A stretch of 59,508 nt of DNA, filler included, from Platydemus manokwari (Eukaryota), in assembly GCA_037951405.1 (NCBI GenBank). It is 5 parts of 5 records of this genome, joined end to end, with 100 filler letters (N's around TTAATTAATTAA, not from the genome) between each part and the next. Parts side by side here need not be neighbours in the genome. Positions count along the whole stretch, not along the records: positions 24,368 to 36,314 come from JBBMOY010378889.1; 4 more parts are not named here. One strand, 5' to 3'. The position numbers and the translations under genes were made by a program. The notes below the pieces were generated by a model. The model did not search any database, was not told the origin of the DNA, and was given only the letters and a program-made list of their open reading frames with translations. Positions 24,368-36,314 of this stretch are shown piece after piece. The stretch's first letter is position 1. Every line of letters starts with the position of its first letter.

Positions 24368-26353
24368 GTTTTTAATTAATAAAATTGTGAAAATCCTAAT
24401 CATGAATTCTTTTGATTCAACACAAGCAACAAACGAAGTCGCTGTTACTAACAAATAATATTATCCATTTATAAACTTATCATTATATCATAAAATTTAT
24501 TTATTATTCCTACCGCAAGGGGTCTCAACATTCGTTTACAAAAATAGCTTTTGTGTTCATTCATTCTGTTTTAAATATGATTTTTGTCCCATCACTTTTA
24601 TTCAATAAATTTTGACATTCACGTCACTTTATCTATCGATTAAATCTTGCTATTGTTAAAATAAACAAGAAAGAAAGTCATAAAATCTCATCAAAACCTA
24701 TAACTTATATTGAGTATTTGTATAAATAGACAATAATAAAAGTGCTCCAAGTGACATTAACGCAAGTCAATTATAATAAGTACTTACAAAAGCTTGGCAA
24801 GCTACAGAAACATACAAATTACCTTTGATGATTGATATTAAAATTAATAAGAGAGAAAAATCAATAAAATAATAATCAGATAAAGCAGTGGGAGATACAG
24901 AAAATAATAATTGCAACATTTTAAGAATGAAAATCAAAAAATAATGATATGTGCGCAAAAATAAAATAATAATTACGAAACTAATAATGGCCTCACTATT
25001 TGGTAGTAAAGAAAATAATTAAGTGTTAATATGCCAACGTTGTGAAATAACATAGAAACAATACCGAAAGACATGGATAGCATCATAGCAAAACAAGAGA
25101 CAACTCATCATAATCAATCACAACAAATCACAACATACAGAAAGTTTCTTCGGATAGCAAAATATCGATGGCAGTGATTAAATTTGATCTGGTGATCTTC
25201 ATGTACTGTATTCAGTTCCAATTTTCTTAAATACAAATTTGAAGACTTTGGTGATTTTTTACAAAAACTTCTGATAGTAGCTTCCGTTGTTAGTTTCTTA
25301 GTATTCAGTATGTTATAAAAACCAGCAAAATAACCGCACAAACCATGGAGAAAATCCTCAATTAATCGATACGCACAGATTCTATTGCTTTGATCTGTCG
25401 TAACTTTTATGCGATTTTCTAATGGTTGTTATCTCTGTCTAATTTCTGGGTACTGATCCCGTTCATTGATTTGACCACTGTGAGTGTAATCCCGTAACTT
25501 GATTATTTGACGCTTTAGTTTCCTGTATAATATTGTGATCGCAAATTAAAATTTTAATGTCCAGCATTGGTAACATTACTATCGCATTAAGTTATTCGAT
25601 GTTATCGCGAGTAACACTTTCTAAAGATCGTTCAGATACAATTCCACCCTTTCCATAAAGATAATTTCATTAAAGCTCAATTTAAACAATTCATATAAAC
25701 TCTGTTTTTTGAGTTGTCAAGGGAATGGAACAAAAATATCATGGTTACGCAAATTATTTTTTGATAAATGAACATTGATGGCAAGACGGCTAATAGATTA
25801 AAAAATTAATTTTTCTATTTCACCAATTTAAAAATTACTCTATTATGAAGATAAATTCGAATAACAACTTAACGATTTAGAGATAAGACTTTATTGATTG
25901 TAATTGTTCATACAATGCGTTCTTGTTTAAATAATCTAACAGTAAAGATATTGTAACATGACATCATTTAGACATATTTTTTACAAAAATACAAATTCAT
26001 TCATGTACAACCTTGATACCGCGAGTGTGAAAACAAAATGCTAGCCATCGAAATAACACGAATAAAATAGTAAGCTGTTTTAATTGATTTGTAATATAGT
26101 GAATCACTGAATTTTATAAAGTTATTAAATGCACAATTATAATTGAAGAAAATAATCATTAAATATGAACTAATAATATCATATGTATATATTTGTGTAC
26201 AAAAACCTTTACACTAAAACAATTAATGACAATGAATTAAATAATAATTAAAAGGTGACATATTTGATAAAATCGAATAAATACAATAACATGAGCAATC
26301 AATGGAGAATAGTTTATTCACATAACAATCAAATTATCAAATCATATTCAAAT

Positions 26354-29300
26354 TTACATGATGGAGCATAAGCTTTTATTTTCTTGAACTGGTTCTTCTG
26401 AGTCGGAACACTGATCGTAAAACGAGTCATCATTCGATGTTTCTAAAACGGGATTAGCTCTCGGATTCGACTGAAAGCTTTTCCAATTATTTGCTTCTTC
26501 TCTTTTATATCCTGTTGAAGGCATCGCTGTTAATTTCTTCAAAGCACCTGATTTTGCAGTATCAATGTGACTTGGTCTGGCATAATTATCTCTGCTGACA
26601 GGATTCACTAAATCACCCATTGGTGTAGAAAATACCGAATGTGCTGTCACTGACTGACTGATATTTGGAATTTGTGGAGGAGAATTGTTGTGTAGTCTGA
26701 CACGAGCAGAAATCAAATCCGACAAATCGGAATTCTTTTTCAATGGTGATTTACTATTTTCAAATTTTGGAACGATCGATTTACTACCAATAAGTCTTTG
26801 TTTTTCTTTTTGAAATAAATCCGATTGATAATTCAGATTTTTATTGCGCTTTTCGATGATTTTATTCTTTGTAATTTTCATTTCTTCTTCCATTCTTTTT
26901 GTGAAATCTGCCAAATCTTCTTGTTCATCTTTAGATGCTACCTCATCCGTTGCACTATTAAACGAGTTTCCATGAATTTCCTTCACTTCTACCTCTCGAT
27001 TAAAAGTCACACTTTGTCTTTTTTCAATATTAACTCGAGACATTTTTCTATTTGCCTCTACATCTTCTTCTAGACACACCATTGGCCGTTTGTAAGGTGA
27101 GGGCTTAGACAGTATGCCAATGGGTTTTTGTTCTCTCATGCTGTGAAATTTAAACGGTGATGGTGCTATGGAGATAGGTTTATTGAGTTCGGATATTTGT
27201 GAAGTTTTTTTCAAATCACCAGATATGACAGGCGAAAGAAAAGACAAGCTTTCGTGAGTCAATCTTGGTATTGTGGTTTCGGAAACTTTTGGAGGTGTGC
27301 GTTGACTTTCCATAGGATCATTACTTTGAGATACTTTTTCTAATTTTTGTTTTTTAATTTGATCGATCGTCATCAAACCAGGAACTATATTAGAACTAAC
27401 TGGAAGTGTTTTTGATTTTGTAGGTTCTTTCGATTTGATTTCGTTTAAGTTGGGTGTATGAATACCAGATTGACGACCCCTTATTTTATTTCGAACTGGG
27501 CTCAATTTTCTCTCTTTTAATTCTTTAGTCGTTACCAAGCCTGGAACCTTTTCTAAATCTGCGTCATCTACAGTTGCGTCACTGGTTTTTACCGCTGATT
27601 TTTCTTTAAATGTTATTAAATTACTTGGTTTATTCTCAACCACATCATTGATAAGCTCTGATGATTTATGAGAGATATTTGTAGATATCTTATCTACATG
27701 AGTTTCTGAGTGAGGAGAGACTGATTTAATTGTGGAAGACTTTGAGATTGAATTAAAATTATCCACAGGATTTTTGATGCCAGCTGCAGCATCGATTTTT
27801 TCCAACATTTTATCCCCTGCATTTACTATTTCACTTGGTTTTTCTGATTTTACATTGATAGATTGACGAACTCTTGTTTTTGAAGTCGTGCTAGTTACAG
27901 ATGAGCCAAGTAACTCAGATTTTCTTTTTCTAAGATCCTCAGTCATCCGAAGACCGGGAATCTTTTCTTGATGCCCTGAACTTAATGCTACATCTGATGG
28001 TTCTACTGTTGCTTTTAGCAATCCAGATTTTCTATTCTTGATATCGGCAGTCATTCGTAGTCCGGGAATCTTTTCTTGTTTTTTAGGTGAATCCGGTACA
28101 ACCATCTCTTCGGTAGGCACAGGAATTTTTGACAAATTCTTGGCACTGACCAATCCAGATTTTCGATTTCTAATATTATTTAGCATAATAAGTCCGGGTA
28201 CCTTCGATTCTGCCTTCTGTGTTTCATCAGATTCTTCTTTCTCTACGACAAACGGCTTTTTGACTTTCGGTAAACGACCCATAGTTTTTCGTTGTGCAAC
28301 AACTGCCGGTTTCTCAGAGTTCACTTCTTTTATATCTTCTCTATCTTGAGTCTTTGAAACATCAGTCGTACTAGAAACGGTATGTTCGATTTCTTTAATT
28401 TCCTTAAAATCCATAGTAGCTTTGGTCACCCTTGATGCTTGTCGGCGACATTTATTGCCAACACTTTTATTTACCTCCGGTTTTTGAACAACTCCACGCT
28501 TCCCTAATCTTGAAGCGGAATAATTATCTTCAATTTCCATCTGTTCTGTACCATAATTATCATCGTCTAGCAGCACCGAACAGTCAAAAAGAGCTACTGG
28601 ATCAGCAACTTTCATTTCAACGTCTATTGGTGCTTCCACTTTGTCATCTGGTTTAGCAGCGATTCCTATTTGTCTACTTGATAACTTTGCTTTTGAATTT
28701 TCTTTATTTAAACATGCCTCATCAATTGGTGCTGAAGTCTCTAATTCCTTCTTTTTGGGAATTCGTCCTCTTTTTCTTATACTCTTATTAATATCATCAA
28801 CTTCCATATTGTTTTCTTCTTTCTGAGTATTTACAAGCTTGGTTTCTACAATATTCATTGGAGCATTATCTACTTTTTTTGCCTCTGGCCTACCTCTCTT
28901 TTTGGGTGTTTCATCAACTTTAGACACAATATTATCTTCATTTAATTCGATCTGTTCTTTAATAGACAATAATTTAGTTTTTTTCTTAGGTGTTTCCATC
29001 ACAACATCTTTTAATGTACTCTGTTCATCAACATCTTTAGTCAATCTAGTTTTTCTTCTAGAATTCATAGAGACTTCTTCCGAAACATTCAAACTCTTAG
29101 GTTTACTTTCTTTATTAATTAACTTATCAAGAATTTTAAAATCTTCTAAGCGAATATAAAAGTCTTTTAAATCTTTAATAATTATCTCACCTTTTTCTTT
29201 AGATGACTTATCGCTACATCGATCTTCATTCGTGATATCGGATGTAACATTCTTTTGCTTTAATATTTCTAAACGACGCAATCCAGGCTGGCTTTCTTTG

Positions 29301-29458
29301 CTTGATTTTGGGGCAGCATAAATTTCATCCTTAGCTTTAGACTTTTTCTGCGCAGCTTTACTGAAATAATTTTAAAATATTAAATTCCAATTGTTAAAAA
29401 TGAAAGACAATTACCTTCGCAAATTTTCTTTTCTATTAATTCGACCCGAAACAGGCAT
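26354..29458 (-). CDS. Orphan ~1016-aa Lys/Ser/Glu-rich protein with AT-hook-like motifs, internal repeats and C-terminal CaaX (CSIM)
   Basis: Exon 1 29458-29415 (MPVSGRINRKENLR), 54-nt GT-AG intron, exon 2 29360-26354 fully open (3007 nt); total 3051 nt in frame. Ends ...ENKSLCSIM*. Confidence 0.9.
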
Positions 29459-32400
29459 CAAAGAATAATGATTAATATAATACTGATTAATATATGAATA
29501 TCTAAATTTTGAATAAAAGAAAATGGATTATTTTTAAAACAAAAATTACATAGATAACACCATTTTAAAAACATATTTTTATATTAAAAATATTAAAATA
29601 CGGAAAATAATTGCACATTTATTAACATAAATAGACACTAAATATCAATATTAATTTAGAACAAGCAGATGATATACTATTTTGAACTCAGTTACTTTGT
29701 GAAAATTTGAGGTAAAAACTATAATACGAAAAATAATTCAAGACTGAATAATTATTAGACTTCATTTTAACGAATAAAATAAATTAAACTATTAATTTCG
29801 AGAACATCTATTTATTTGTAATAATTTTGTAAATAACGCACTAAGTCAGATTATAAAAAACTTTTATAAGAGAAATTTGTTGTTCCCACTTTCTCTGAAA
29901 TTTATATGACAAGCTATTCTTCATGTTTATTAGTACATAGTTCTTTCATGTTCTATTGCTCTGATACTTCCCACGTCATATTCATTTGTGATACTACATA
30001 ATAGTATTTTTATCGAGTTGTCTCAACTGCTCATTATGTTCCCCCGTAATGGCTGGACATAATTAGTTATTGTGAAATATCTTTTCATATCATTTACAGC
30101 TCTTCTCCACTTCTTATTATAACATCATTTATGACCCCTATTACCACCAAAGATGCTATCGTGATAGCTACTATTCTGTAATTTTCTATTCTTACTCGAA
30201 AATTGGCTTTAATTACTCTTCCAGAAACAGATAGTATCCAGATTACTTCTTCCTTCATCTTCCTTTGGTTTATTAATTCACTTTTTGGCAAAACATCAAA
30301 TATTCTTTTAGTCTAACCGGAACCTTGCCAATATCTCTCATTTCTTATGATAAATTTACTGACACGTGTCCTAACAGTCACCTTTTGCTGGATCACCGAA
30401 TTTTTTTGTTGAGAATCCTACTTATTGTGCTTATAACGTGTGTCAATTGTTAACGGCTTATTCGGTCTAAATGTGATGCTTTCAGCAATGTTGGATCACA
30501 CTCATACTGATTCATTTCATAATTTATGATTGATTCTTCAAAAAACACCAGTTTTCTAAGTCTCATTAAAAAGCATATGTTTGTTTAGTGGTTGCATCGA
30601 ACACCTTTTGAAATATCATCAGTTGCCCTTGATAATCTCACTCTATTTCTATGCTTGTTTCTTCCTTGACGACATCCAGACGTCTACGTTCGTTCACTTT
30701 ACATTTTCATATCGCATTTCCTCGGACCTTTAATTCTGATTACATAATCCGAGTATGCAGTATTATTTCACTTTGGTTGTCATCAAAGTATGTATTTTCC
30801 TTCTCGACCACAGTAAAGCAATGATTCTATATACTTCACAGTGGATTTCATTGAGATTTATTTAAAATAAATCAATTTCATTTGATTTACGTAGTGAAAT
30901 TTCATTCCAGGATCTCACCTACTTCTAACAAACAAATACTAAATCCTATAGTTGATTTATTACATTTTTAAAATAATAATACACACGTGTTCCTTATTAT
31001 CTCGAATAATATCATCAGGAACGTTATTCACTGTATGATGGTAAGCATTTTATCAATAGTTTTACTTTAAACTTCATAACATTTCCCTTTCATTCATAAA
31101 ATTTTATTCTTGTTCAATACAAAAATAAACTTCATCAACACTTTAATAAATTGATATTGCTCCGGTTTTCTCCAAATTTTATCTGTGAAATGTGATGGAA
31201 TTGGTTCACTATTTCTACTATTTTCATAACTACCATTCCCTCAAGTTATTATGATAATTTATAAACTCCAAAATCTTATTTTTTTAAAATTTTTGTATAA
31301 TAAATTAAATTGAATACGTTAACTTTCATATATTTTAGTTGCGAGGATCTCTGCAGCTTTTCGTTTAAATTAAATTAATTTGTTTTACCAGACTTTGATT
31401 ATTACTAAAATATTGGCAACTTTTGAAAATTAGTCAATACTTTCAAAAAATTTATGTTATATTTTTTATCAACACGTGATCACAACTTTAAAAGTTATAT
31501 TGACAGGATCATAAGTATCCGGATATCGGATCTCTTCTTCACACCAACAGCCTGTAACTCTACGGGATGTGCATTTTAATTATTAATAGAATTGAGCTGG
31601 TTTATTAAATGAGTTATGATTATTTTGAAATGAACATAGTATAACAAGTTATCGACTTGACATAACACGAATTATGAAACTTCACATTATTATTATAAGA
31701 TGGGTTGCAAATCATCAGATTTCAAAATGGGTCTCTCAAATCTCTGCAAACAGAGATTCACTTCACAACAAATTTATTGATTTAACTAATTATTCATTAT
31801 CAAGCAACTTTAGTTTTTCATTGGTAAGAGGTACCAACATAATCGAATGACACACAGCTTAATTGTAACCTGATTTTTCGTGTTATAACATTTAAATAAG
31901 AATTTGAATTGTTAATTGCGATTTGCATGTAGAGAAAGTACCATAGTTCAACATAATTACATTTATATTGTATTTATTGCGAGTAAATTAACAACCATGA
32001 ATACTACTTCAGTTCGCAAAAATTGTTTTAGTTTTTAGAAATTTAACCGGAGCCAGCATTGAATTAATCATAAACATATTTTAGTAACCAATAAAGTAAT
32101 TATATAATTATATTAAACAAACTGAATCTTAATAAAAATCAGTTATTTAAACTATTCAGTGCAAATTGATTATAGGGTTTTAATGAAAAACTTTAACAAA
32201 ACAAAAGAGGTTTGATTTAATAGACTATGCAAAAAAATTTGATTGAGTCGTACTCGCAACACTGGAATCTGACTGACGTTCGTTCTAGATACAATTGTTT
32301 CAATACTTATGCAGATGTTAATATTTTTTGTAATTTTTCTTGTGCAATATTTGACCGATAAAAACCTATAAAACCCATAGTCCATTGAAAAATCCAGAAA

Positions 32401-33899
32401 ACTACTATTTTATAGAAAAGAAATCAAACGTTCATATCATCTGTTATTCCACAGCGTGAAATTTTAAAAGGAAAGCTTTTAAATAAAATTTAAAATATTC
32501 GTATAATTGTTTTTACTTCGATATCTTAATGTTCGAAATTGATTATTAAAAAATAAAATTTCTAAAATATTGTTTGGAATCCGATACAGTTCGAACGACA
32601 CTGAAAAAATTATAGATAGATATCATAATAATGACCAAATCCATCTTTCATCTCTTATTCTAACCACAAATCAAACTATCGACAAATTTGTCAACTATTC
32701 GGAAAATCCAAAAATCAATCGACAATAATTCGTCTCTAATAATTCGTAAATTATTCATCAATAAATGCGTTCGTACAACCACACTATTGATGCAAACTCA
32801 AATCAAAGAGTGAAAATCTATAAAATATTCAGATTCCTGTTCAGCTAATTCAATGTCCTAATACTTGAATTACTGTTCGATGTTAACTGCAGCTTTAATA
32901 ATAATAATATTTAATAATAATTAATTGATTTGTTTACGACGGAGAATGATTGTCTTTATTCTTATGGTATGATCAATAAAGATGAATTCAGTTAGTTAAC
33001 GGATCCATTTTTTAAAGAAGAGATCTGTGAGCAAGAAGATTCTTTATTACTTGAAATCTATTATTTGAAGAAGACTACCAGTAAGCGTGAGTAACTTTTC
33101 CTTTGTAAGATTTTAATGCTAAACTATACATCAACCTATTGACGGGCCATAACAATTATTTGATTGAGAAATGGTTAATAAACTCCCTCTTATGAGGAGG
33201 AAAACCAATTACCTTTCAAGATGATAACTCGATAATAAAAAATAGACGATGAAATATATACAAGTATTTTATAAAAATGTTTCTTAACATATGGTCTTTC
33301 AGTAAAATACTGGACATATATGGGAATCCTGATCTCCGACAATACATGAACTTCTTGTGCTGTTCTTGATTGGCAAAACGTTTCCTATAATCGTATATGA
33401 CAATTCTGATAATGTGTAACTAAATCTGTAATAATGTGTTGGGGAAATGGCAAAATGAAAACTATAATCAATCCAAATATGAGAAACTTTAACAATTTTT
33501 GCATTCAAATAGTTTCGCTTGATAACATTAAATTATTCATCGATGTATAGTGTAAATGTATAAGTATTGTAACAATTTTTAGGGTTGATTATTCAAGCGG
33601 TTATTATTGTACCCATTTTTATGAATGGCTTGATTAATCAAGCAATGTATTTTATTTTTACCTTTTTATAATTAATTAAATTTTTTTGTAAATCAAGCTT
33701 CTGGTTTATTATTGAATTGGAAAAAATAATAATAACAATAATAATTATCATAAAATGATAATGATAATAATTTATTTGCGGTTGATAAATATTTTAGCAC
33801 CTTTTCAAGAAAATATTAAGAATTAAACGTAGTAAAATATTGAATTATTTATATCACATTATTTCAAAGTTAACGAGTAAGTTTATTTTAATAAAATAA

Positions 33900-34760
33900 A
33901 AAGGAAATCCCATGGGAATAAATTTAATTGCACCCATTTTTGCCAATAATCCATGACGATTAAATTCGTCTCCCAATTCATATAAATAGGGGGAAAACGT
34001 CATAATTCACGAACTAATGCCAGTTACACAAAACCGTCTGATACGTGAAGTCATACTCGTCAGTAGAAGCTCGTATTCGATCCGATCCATATTGTGCCAT
34101 AGCCATTGTTTCAAGTATATATATATATATGCTCGTTAACGTGAGTCAGATTAGTTCTGTAAACCACTGATCAATACTATAAACACCGTGTATATTGTTC
34201 AACTATAGGGCTTTGTTTCAATATCTTGAAAGGTGGTTTTGCTGCAAGAGTATGCAGTTTATTAACCGTAAATCTTTCCCAGAAGCTTGATAAGGTTGTT
34301 CGTATTTTTTGTTGTATATTTAGCCATTGTAAAACGTAATAATTTATATAATTGCCTAGTGTAACTTTGGTGTCAATAAATATTTTTGTAGACAACGAAT
34401 TTGTTATTGATTTGAGTAAGATTTGATAATATTGATAGTAAAGGTTGAGACTGATAGCATTGAAATAGAGACTGATATTTTAGTTAAAATCTTTATAGTG
34501 TTGACATAGGAATAATTTTAGTAGTAAAAATTGATCGTTGTTGCCGTTTGATATTATCATCATATAATATTAAACTCGAGACGAGGAAAGAAAGAAATAG
34601 GTTCAATAGTTCGTAAGTAGGGCTTGATCAGAACCACGTGTGACTGATTAAGACAACAGTGATGATCAACAATAATACGAATAAATTAAATTTCGAGACT
34701 GATAAGGTTAATAGCAATAAAAACAAGCGAGCCCAAAACGCATCACAATTAGATAAGACT
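33900..34760 (+). repeat. Dispersed LTR-like repeat, copy A
   Basis: Alignable by eye to the reverse complements of 46390-47170 and 47230-47572 (e.g. TATAAATAGGGGG; GGTGGTTTTGCTGCAAGAG; GTTGCCGTTTGATATTATC; TAGGGCTTGATCAGAA). Confidence 0.8.
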
Positions 34761-36314
34761 CTATTAAATATTAGAAATATTAACAATTGAATAATACCTT
34801 ATATTAGACAGACAAAAACTGTAGTGACCTGAAGGCATTGAACAGTCACTGGAAGGAACTACGTGCCACCCTTCTGCAATGAAAAACTAAGGAAATGATT
34901 TTATAAATACTACAAACTCTAACCACTTTGTAGCAATTTGATTTAAACCTTGCAATTAATCTCCTTTCAGAGATTGATACAATTTTAAAGTGTAGAGAAA
35001 TAATAAAAATCACCATGATGAATTAATTGAAATATTGTTAAATGAGCTGAATTCGTACAAACAATCTGTAATGAAAAATCAGCAATTGAATTCCTTAGAT
35101 AAATTTGTTTGTTTACAGATAATTATTGTCTCTAAGATCAACCTCAATAATCGAATTATTAATTGATAATCAGTCCCACTGAAGTCACAATAATATCCAT
35201 GTAATTATAAATGAAGAGAGGGCGAGGAAGAGTTTCCGGATGAATTATAAATAAATAATAATAAATAAAGATAAAAATTAATTAGTGATAAAAATAAAAG
35301 AATTATTTAGTAATTAATATGTAATATCACAGTGAAAAAAGCATTCAAATAATGCATAACATTACCGTCTACCCACTGATCAGACTTGTATAAATAGCCG
35401 ATCAGGATTGCATTCAACACCTATAAAAATAACGACCGAAAATATCGATTATTCGTAAGGCAATCAGATCGTTGAGCGTGTATTATATTTTGGCAAAAGG
35501 AATTATTTTGTTGATGAATTCAAATAAGTTACGCTGAGTCATGTTGATTGGTTATTTTAAATATTTTCATTATCATAATCATAATTACAATTTACTAATT
35601 TATATTTTTAATACCTATTGAATAATCTCTTGTCGAAAAAAATAAATCTTCAAACTCAACTCTCTTCCCCGTCATCTTCAGACTTCCAGCAAATCACTTT
35701 TGTGACGCACTGGGCATTGAAAATCAAATCTTTGTGTTATTTGTCATTGTTGTTCTCCATTTTTCGCAAATAAAACTTGCAAATAATGGTTTGAATCTTG
35801 CATTAGTCAACATGGTGTAGCAATAGGATAACATTGCCGTTATAAATTTATATTTTCAATTTTATAGGATAACAAGGATATCATTCAGCCTTTTCATTAA
35901 ATTAACAATTTTTGTTGATATTAACAACTTAATATTTTAAGTCAAGACAAAAGAGGATCAGGTTTTGTAAGCCTTTAGATCTATTCAGTGAAATAATTTC
36001 AATAACGTGGTCATCAAAGTAAAAGCGATAAGACAACGATAAATATAAATCAAAACAAAAATCCCAAACAATAACAAATATTAATGTAAATATTCCACAT
36101 TTGCTTCATTCAGCTTTATTTATTTTAATCGGAATTATTATTAACACTTTTCATTTATTTTAATAAATAACGTTTAATTTGTTTATATTTCATAAGTTCA
36201 GAAGGATTTGGCTTGTTTAAAATAAAATAATATTAAGATTTATTATGTGCCTGACTCCAAAGGCGCAGTAATAGAAACAGTGATAATAATTTTAATATAA
36301 ATAGAGAATAAATT

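Follow-up and report, generated by a model that had tools for sequence, protein, structure and literature searches.

A two-exon gene of Platydemus manokwari encodes a predicted farnesylated, disordered protein of a new-looking family, possibly placed at the nuclear envelope

The window analysed here is a 59,508-nucleotide (nt) stretch of DNA from Platydemus manokwari (assembly GCA_037951405.1), made of five parts of five records joined end to end with filler; its piece at positions 24368–36314 comes from record JBBMOY010378889.1. Analysis of this piece showed a single evident gene, on the minus strand, with two exons that together encode a protein of 1016 amino acids (aa) ending in CSIM, a CaaX box. 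Exon 2 supplies nearly all of the protein, as an open frame of 1001 residues (29359..26357, minus strand) followed by a stop. The coordinates and the length reproduce those of an earlier note on this DNA, which had taken the product for a prenylated, repeat-bearing protein linking AT-rich chromatin to the inner nuclear membrane. Residues are numbered on the joined 1016-aa model, except where exon-2 residues are named; searches and fold prediction were run on exon 2. The features are collected in Table 1.

Only two proteins matched in libraries of 1.84 billion and 5.8 billion proteins, and both are uncharacterised. P0001 lies on L001, a contig of 3.4 kb of genomic DNA in a Logan assembly, and P0002 is an N-terminal fragment of 642 residues. 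The gene call for P0001 began at an internal ATG, position 502. Upstream of it, L001 carries exon 1 at 20–63 (MPVSGRINRKDNLR), with an AG/gt end in identical phase and then an 86-nt intron, after which exon 2 begins as in the window. Addition of exon 1 and of 117 exon-2 residues (L001:20–63 and 150–501) gives a true L001 product of ~986 aa. The 14 codons of exon 1 differ between the window and L001 by five synonymous changes and one conservative change (E to D). The N-terminus of P0002, MPTGGRINRRDKLRSK, confirms both the start codon and the splice join. The gene model is real, because exon 1, the start codon, the splice phase and the C-terminus are common to L001, and the N-terminus is common to P0002. 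The gene is also under purifying selection.

For a protein rich in K, S, E and N and without a domain match, it could be argued that the frame arose by chance in AT-rich DNA, or is a decaying pseudogene, and that its motifs are low-complexity noise. However, the frame stays open for 3 kb despite ~35% GC, its exon–intron structure, start and stop are kept in a relative whose gene reaches 68% GC, and blocks of 74% identity lie inside 34% identity overall. Conservation in the relatives effectively refutes such an origin, to which we attach almost no probability. The window copy has 31–39% GC and the L001 gene up to 68%, and protein conservation persists. Within L001:1–3417, GC content rises from 0.34 in the first 500 nt to 0.66–0.68 in the 3′ two-thirds, as against 0.31–0.39 in the window; the two genes thus encode one protein family with very different base compositions. 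Base composition and short introns have, at a guess, an arthropod-like look.

The 34% identity between the window protein and L001 was very unevenly distributed. It peaked at 37/50 residues (74%) in the segment around the sequence SVTF and fell to 4–10/50 in many linkers. A mosaic of this kind is the signature expected of a disordered protein kept by short functional motifs. The conserved blocks occur in a fixed order. The start, MPxxGRINR, is followed by EII..FY/CHIxLEDxxxxDKLIN, by the basic stretch TP[KR]KRxR....KKxD, by R[IL]PK[VA][KR][KR]PFVVE[KR][ED] with acidic residues, and by a set of repeats, here called PGL modules after their central tripeptide. After the PGL modules come PIGILSKPSPYKRPMxCL, a block that contains the conserved feature PIGILSKPSPYKRPM, then EKRQSVTFNRxVEVKEIHGNSFNS, a long helix, a second helix, W[KR]SFQ, an acidic serine-rich tail and CxxM. 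The PFVVE sequence with the acidic, serine-containing run EKEESDE (28223–28276) is reminiscent of a SUMO-interaction motif with a CK2 site. Exon 1 also holds a KEN tripeptide (RKENL, 29428–29436), which reads KDN in L001 and RDK in P0002; it was rejected as a degron for the anaphase-promoting complex (APC/C), since it is not conserved, and is probably a chance occurrence.

The searches gave no further member. Word-index protein searches with the whole of exon 2, with the 735–815 block (E up to 10) and with a three-sequence profile returned only P0001 and P0002, and an exhaustive HMMER search of 1.84 billion representatives (E up to 0.001) found no third protein. No Pfam family was matched by exon 2, its C-terminal 256 aa, the L001 protein or P0002; the lone line reported, AAA_21 (E 0.1; 13 bits, where the cutoff is 27), was taken as noise. 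Sequence searches of the PDB with the C-terminal 300 aa, with a profile (A2) and with the 41-aa SVTF block (E up to 10) gave no match. In JGI metagenomes, a protein-pattern scan produced 299 pattern matches, none of them confirmed, and a back-translated VTFNRxVEVKEIHGN pattern produced no matches. The window protein itself is absent from the searched libraries, which include NCBI and UniRef entries; it follows that these libraries contain no annotation of the source genome, whose lineage has probably been sampled sparsely. On these searches, the status of the protein is that of no detectable known family, as the earlier note had supposed; this is not a claim of restriction to few species.

Structure prediction with AlphaFold2, using exon 2 and the three-sequence alignment, gave a model without a folded domain. 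The mean predicted local distance difference test score (pLDDT) was 38.8, and 880 of 1001 residues scored below 50 (88% disordered), which supports the initial description of a largely low-complexity protein. The sole confidently predicted element is the helix at exon-2 residues 810–858, which starts 22 residues past KRQSVTF; a charged helical stretch had been proposed at this place, and the model predicts it with pLDDT of about 90. Short helices of moderate confidence were predicted in three of the PGL modules and in the FYIRLED..DKLIN block.

The PGL module has the form [KI][IV]PGLxMxxx[IL][KR]x[RQ]KSxL and spans 17–19 residues. The window protein contains five canonical copies and one degenerate N-terminal copy, L001 contains six copies, and the P0002 fragment four. 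In 5000 shuffles of the window protein, 0.1 PGL tripeptides were expected against six observed, and the full pattern was expected zero times against five. Across the three members, PGL counts of 6, 6 and 4 compare with 0.06–0.24 expected, and the full pattern was absent from every shuffle. The five-copy novel repeat thus withstood both the shuffle test and the comparison with the two relatives. In repeat 3, the residues IPGLRM, D and RKSEL do not vary among the three members. No match was found between the module and any known motif or domain. In DNA, the window's first three copies still form a 62-nt repeat family (79% and 63% identity), and L001:1139–1410 consists of three tandem 111-nt units with near-identical PGL modules (identity 82–94% over 49-nt cores, and 90% between the first two along all 111 nt). 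The L001 expansion is recent and lineage-specific, and has no counterpart in the window; copy number thus changes through local tandem duplication in each lineage. Each module ends in basic-x-basic-K-S, which is typical of basophilic kinases. In the model, a short helix that closes with this serine tends to form in the module, and the serine may act as a phospho-switch.

Farnesyltransferase substrates of the CaaX type have Cys at −4, an aliphatic a2 and M, S, Q, A or C as X. CSIM has these features (Cys at −4, aliphatic a2, X = M), as the earlier note had recognised. P0002 is truncated and only L001 has a C-terminus, so that C-terminal conservation is known from n = 2 (window and L001), in which DDSFYDQCSDSEEPVQENKSLCSIM aligns with DDSMTSQDSDTGKSKCALM, each followed by a stop; the box is CSIM in the former and CALM in the latter. 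CSIM is also the box of prelamin A, and in a yeast reporter human farnesyltransferase modified it completely (PMC11152559). Because the box is conserved and has been validated in that reporter, farnesylation of the C-terminal Cys is predicted, and we regard it as likely. The region just before the box is acidic and contains neither a conserved second Cys (the Cys at −17 is not conserved) nor a polybasic run. Two observations that had been named in advance as telling against the proposal, orthologues lacking the CaaX box and a clear match to a known family, were both looked for, and neither occurred.

The AT-hooks proposed in the earlier note did not hold up as a feature of the family. Two basic sequences, KKRGRPE at 167–173 and RKRGRIPKK at 210–218, had been put forward. 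RGRP occurs once in the window protein and in neither relative, where the aligned residues are PRKRIRAA and LKRKGRH, and the second site reads GRI-P in place of GRP. Pfam AT_hook gave no match to exon 2 at E up to 1. As the RGRP core is not conserved, a tether to AT-rich chromatin is without a conserved basis, and binding to AT-rich DNA seems improbable. In basic patch 1, the T, R, K and D columns are invariant in the alignment, while the GRP core is not. The conserved TP[KR]KR patch is better read as a putative nuclear import signal beside a proline-directed phosphosite.

Sites for proline-directed kinases, [ST]Px[KR], occur eight times in the window protein (TPKK at 138 and 166, SPKK at 439, SPVR at 635, TPPK at 703, SPFK at 749, SPYK at 769 and SPLK at 886), against 1.8 expected (a fraction of 0.0002 of 5000 shuffles reached eight). 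In L001 there are five against 2.0 expected (p = 0.05), and in P0002 three against 1.5 (not significant). Only two of the eight keep their position in the relatives, TP[KR]K at 166 and SPYK at 769. The cyclin-dependent kinase sites first described are thus enriched in the window protein, but the enrichment is not significant in the relatives and six of the positions are not kept. All the motifs named at the outset are present in the window and exceed chance in its sequence, as judged by shuffling; how far they may be functional varies with their conservation.

The best conserved block contains KRQSVTF at 796–802, which is invariant in both members that cover it. The proposal that this is an RVxF docking site for protein phosphatase 1 (PP1) is weak. 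The V-E-V and E-I that follow V-T-F are invariant in L001 and lie roughly where PP1 partners have a PhiPhi motif. The RVxF pattern (Wakula 2003, ELM) is [RK]-x(0,1)-[VI]-{P}-[FW]. SVTF falls outside it, since two residues (Q and S) separate the basic residue from Val and the pattern allows none or one. In Ki-67 and RepoMan, which read RVSF...EL and RVTF...EV, the KiR-SLiM, FDxxLP(P/A)N(T/S)PL(R/K)(R/K)Gx(T/S)P, directly follows the RVxF-PhiPhi element (PMC5005033). It is absent after SVTF in the window, which reads SVTFNREVEVKEIHGNSFNSATDE; with neither this motif nor a Pfam match, kinship with Ki-67 and RepoMan was rejected. Phosphorylation of the Aurora B type gates RV[ST]F motifs (PMC8786283), and KRxS before V-T-F would suit gating by an Aurora- or PKA-type kinase, which is offered as a lead and not as a result. 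Docking of PP1 by the SVTF block seems possible but doubtful, and binding of PP1 and cell-cycle control would at present be conjectural.

Table 1. Features of the gene in window coordinates (all on the minus strand), with conservation or predicted structure
Feature	Position	Strand	Relatives or prediction
Exon 1: ATG, 14 codons and 2 nt (MPVSGRINRKENLR); donor AG/gtaa	29415–29458	-	homologous exon at L001:20–63; P0002 starts MPTGGRINRRDKLRSK
Intron, 54 nt, gt..ag, phase 2; gtaa donor at 29414, tttcag end at 29361	29361–29414	-	identical position and phase in L001 (intron 64–149); P0002 spans junction (..LRSK..)
Exon 2, 3007 nt, 1001 full codons and stop (26354–26356)	26354–29360	-	
Degenerate N-terminal PGL-like copy (QPGLRRLEILKQK)	29252–29290	-	not aligned to a PGL in relatives
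Conserved block EII..FYIRLEDFKILDKLIN with short predicted helix	29105–29188	-	helix at exon-2 residues 72–84, pLDDT about 50
Basic patch 1, TPKKRGRPEAKKVD; AT-hook of the earlier note, read here as putative import signal and TP site	28868–28909	-	aligned to TPRKRIRAAVKKAD (L001) and TLKRKGRH..VEKVD (P0002)
Basic patch 2, RKRGRIPKKK	28748–28777	-	loose match only, LKRKGRSVSRR in L001
Conserved block RLPKVKKPFVVEKEESDE	28223–28276	-	R, P, K and PFVVE invariant in 3/3 members
PGL repeat 1 (KVPGLIMLNNIRNRKSGLV)	28148–28204	-	DNA repeat family D1; predicted helix 390–399
PGL repeat 2 (KIPGLRMTADIKNRKSGLL)	28016–28072	-	shuffle count; DNA repeat family
PGL repeat 3 (KIPGLRMTEDLRKRKSELL), best conserved copy	27908–27964	-	predicted helix 471–483, pLDDT about 68
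PGL repeat 4 (KVPGLVTTKELKERKLSPV)	27494–27550	-	shuffle count and alignment
PGL repeat 5 (IVPGLMTIDQIKKQKLEKV)	27332–27388	-	alignment; predicted helix 665–673
Conserved block PIGILSKPSPYKRPMVCL, holds conserved SPYK	27071–27124	-	17/18 residues identical in L001; SPY..P kept in P0002
Conserved block EKRQSVTFNREVEVKEIHGNSFNS (RVxF-like V-x-F, then V-E-V and E-I)	26954–27025	-	23/24 residues identical in L001
Long amphipathic charged alpha-helix (predicted), exon-2 residues 810–858	26786–26932	-	pLDDT 89–97; hydrophobic pattern kept in L001
Second short helix (predicted; DLSDLISARVRLH), exon-2 residues 878–890	26690–26728	-	pLDDT about 72; aligned to GLSQMIAARALEN in L001
WKSFQ motif, the protein's only Trp	26471–26485	-	WRSFQ in L001
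Acidic tail (DDS..Q.SD..KS) ending in CaaX box CSIM (26357–26368)	26357–26431	-	L001 ends DDSMTSQDSDTGKSKCALM, then stop
AATAAA, candidate poly(A) signal, 36 nt past stop	26313–26318	-	

Elsewhere in the piece, the remaining 9 kb contain ten further open frames without a Pfam match, and the whole piece is without an Rfam match. Upstream of the gene, the minus strand of 29868–30867 shows strand skews like those of the coding exon (GC −0.15 to −0.30, AT −0.2), with GC content above its surroundings, many stops and no Pfam match; it is possibly an untranslated region or a non-coding exon of the same or an upstream gene. A 15-nt AT-rich tandem duplication lies directly upstream of the start codon (29464–29494), and an (AAT)16 microsatellite occurs at 33725–33771.

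The explanation that best fits these features is a lineage-restricted, farnesyl-anchored, disordered, multivalent scaffold, most likely at the nucleoplasmic face of the inner nuclear membrane; taken as a whole, this reading could equally prove right or wrong. Farnesyltransferase would modify the Cys of CSIM, and the conserved TP[KR]KR patch would drive nuclear import. The combination of a nuclear localisation signal (NLS) and a farnesyl group, lacking a polybasic or palmitoyl second signal, would then place the protein at the inner nuclear membrane, as with GFP-NLS-CaaX, B-type lamins and the Drosophila protein Kugelkern. The PGL modules would bind a partner multivalently, and phosphorylation at the serine of RKS would switch this binding. 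The invariant PIGILSKPSPYKRPM and KRQSVTFNRxVEVKEI blocks would dock one or two conserved partners, with PP1 a candidate for the second, and the long helix would dimerise or bind a partner. Partners are probably bound at the PGL modules and at the two invariant blocks of the C-terminal part. Placement at the nuclear envelope, taken by itself, is slightly favoured, because the protein has an import-signal-like patch and no second signal for the plasma membrane, and an NLS with a CaaX box suffices for nuclear-membrane association and deformation (PMC2947476).

Several points weigh against this explanation. Of the only two relatives one has a C-terminus, so that conservation of the CaaX box is a comparison of two sequences. 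The import signal is read from a basic patch alone, and the SVTF block departs from the canonical RVxF pattern. Farnesylated proteins sit also on the endoplasmic reticulum (ER), Golgi, plasma membrane, peroxisomes and kinetochores. In its most specific form, the proposal would make the three sequences an undescribed family of lamin-independent farnesylated inner-nuclear-membrane proteins, in which phospho-switchable PGL helices bind a chromatin or lamina partner multivalently, while PP1, or a different conserved enzyme, is brought to the envelope by the invariant, non-canonical SVTF-VEV block. The family would be a functional counterpart and possibly a very distant relative of Kugelkern. We consider this form speculative and rather unlikely to hold in full.

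The conserved parts might serve elsewhere in the cell. The protein could be a mitotic scaffold that is farnesylated and sits at the kinetochore or the periphery of chromosomes. Its mitotic localisation would be controlled by the farnesyl group and by proline-directed phosphorylation (cf. CENP-E, CENP-F and Spindly), and SVTF would recruit PP1 on exit from mitosis, as happens in Ki-67, RepoMan and KNL1. The conserved CxxM end, the invariant KRQSVTF with VEV/EI near the PhiPhi position, the two conserved [ST]Px[KR] sites and a basophilic KRxS directly before V-x-F, of the kind used by Aurora B on RV[ST]F (PMC8786283), are consistent with such a role. However, SVTF lies outside the RVxF pattern and the KiR-SLiM is absent, the protein has neither a motor, a long coiled coil nor an FHA domain and matches nothing in Pfam, the exon-1 KEN is not conserved, and the relatives show no significant excess of [ST]Px[KR]; we consider a mitotic scaffold unlikely. 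To a similar low degree we would credit a cytoplasmic scaffold, whose farnesyl tail would sit on the ER, Golgi or plasma membrane while its basic patches bind membrane or RNA. A CaaX box alone targets endomembranes, the basic patches are putative import signals only, and net charge is positive along most of the protein. The tail upstream of the box is acidic, though, with no polybasic stretch and no conserved second Cys, and TP[KR]KR..KK looks like a classical import signal.

Descent from a common ancestor with Kugelkern, with farnesyl-driven growth and shaping of the nuclear membrane in early embryos, would be compatible with the inner-nuclear-membrane scaffold favoured above. The two proteins would have diverged beyond detection save for short blocks. 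The kinds of parts are alike: both are largely non-globular, with a putative coiled coil, an NLS (putative here), conserved blocks and a CxxM-type box, and without a lamin rod (PMC2947476). The order of the parts differs, however, as the coiled coil is N-terminal in Kugelkern (137–184) and the helix follows the conserved block here; the lengths are 570 and 1016 aa; PGL repeats are not described for Kugelkern; and the exhaustive HMMER search surfaced no third protein. That search surfaced no similarity to Kugelkern at E up to 0.001, which argues against easy detectability if Kugelkern is in the library, and a literature search for non-dipteran orthologues found nothing useful. Orthology is thus the least probable of these three alternatives, if by little.

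Should the most specific form of the proposal hold, disordered nuclear shapers or tethers with a CaaX anchor would be known from outside flies as well. A second, unrelated-looking family combining an import signal, linear motifs and CxxM would then suggest that lipid-anchored disordered proteins recurrently couple the nuclear membrane to its contents. To our knowledge, farnesyl anchors inside the nucleus are used by very few non-lamin proteins, of which Kugelkern, believed to be confined to flies, is the foremost. The family also offers a compact set of conserved motifs (the PGL module, PFVVE, PIGILSKPSPYKRPM and the SVTF block). Even if the localisation is wrong, it is a clean orphan disordered protein, conserved only in short motifs and a lipidation box.

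Comparison with known systems showed likeness in part to each of several groups. With the tails of B-type lamins and prelamin A, the protein has in common an NLS, putative here, and a CaaX box ending in Met, CSIM being the prelamin A box and CALM being near the CAIM of lamin B; unlike lamins, it has no intermediate-filament rod or Ig-fold tail (Pfam on 3/3 members; AlphaFold2). Ki-67 and RepoMan (CDCA2) are likewise long and disordered, with internal repeats in Ki-67; they also have hydrophobic residues after V-[ST]-F, and both proline-directed and basophilic phosphosites near this motif. The RVxF pattern, KiR-SLiM, FHA domain and Ki-67 repeat are lacking here, whereas Ki-67 and RepoMan lack a CaaX box. 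In CENP-E, CENP-F and Spindly, a C-terminal CaaX box serves the localisation of a cell-cycle protein, and CENP-E also docks PP1. The C-terminal CaaX is the likeness to these three, but they are long coiled-coil or motor proteins with a box ending in Q, and the protein here has one helix of ~49 residues.

The closest counterpart, compared by description, is Drosophila Kugelkern (Kuk/charleston, CG5175). Kugelkern is a non-lamin farnesylated protein of the inner nuclear membrane, largely non-globular, with an NLS, a putative coiled coil at 137–184 and conserved blocks at 353–404 and 453–473, about 100–220 residues before the end of its 570 aa (PMC2947476). The non-lamin, mostly non-globular character, an NLS (putative here), a helical segment, short conserved blocks in the C-terminal third and a farnesylation box are found in both proteins. 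They differ in length and in the N-terminal position of the coiled coil; neither PGL repeats nor an SVTF block has been reported for Kugelkern, which is known from Diptera only. The gene described here thus belongs to a new-looking family, and the mode predicted for it, that of a lipid-anchored disordered nuclear protein, has known precedent.

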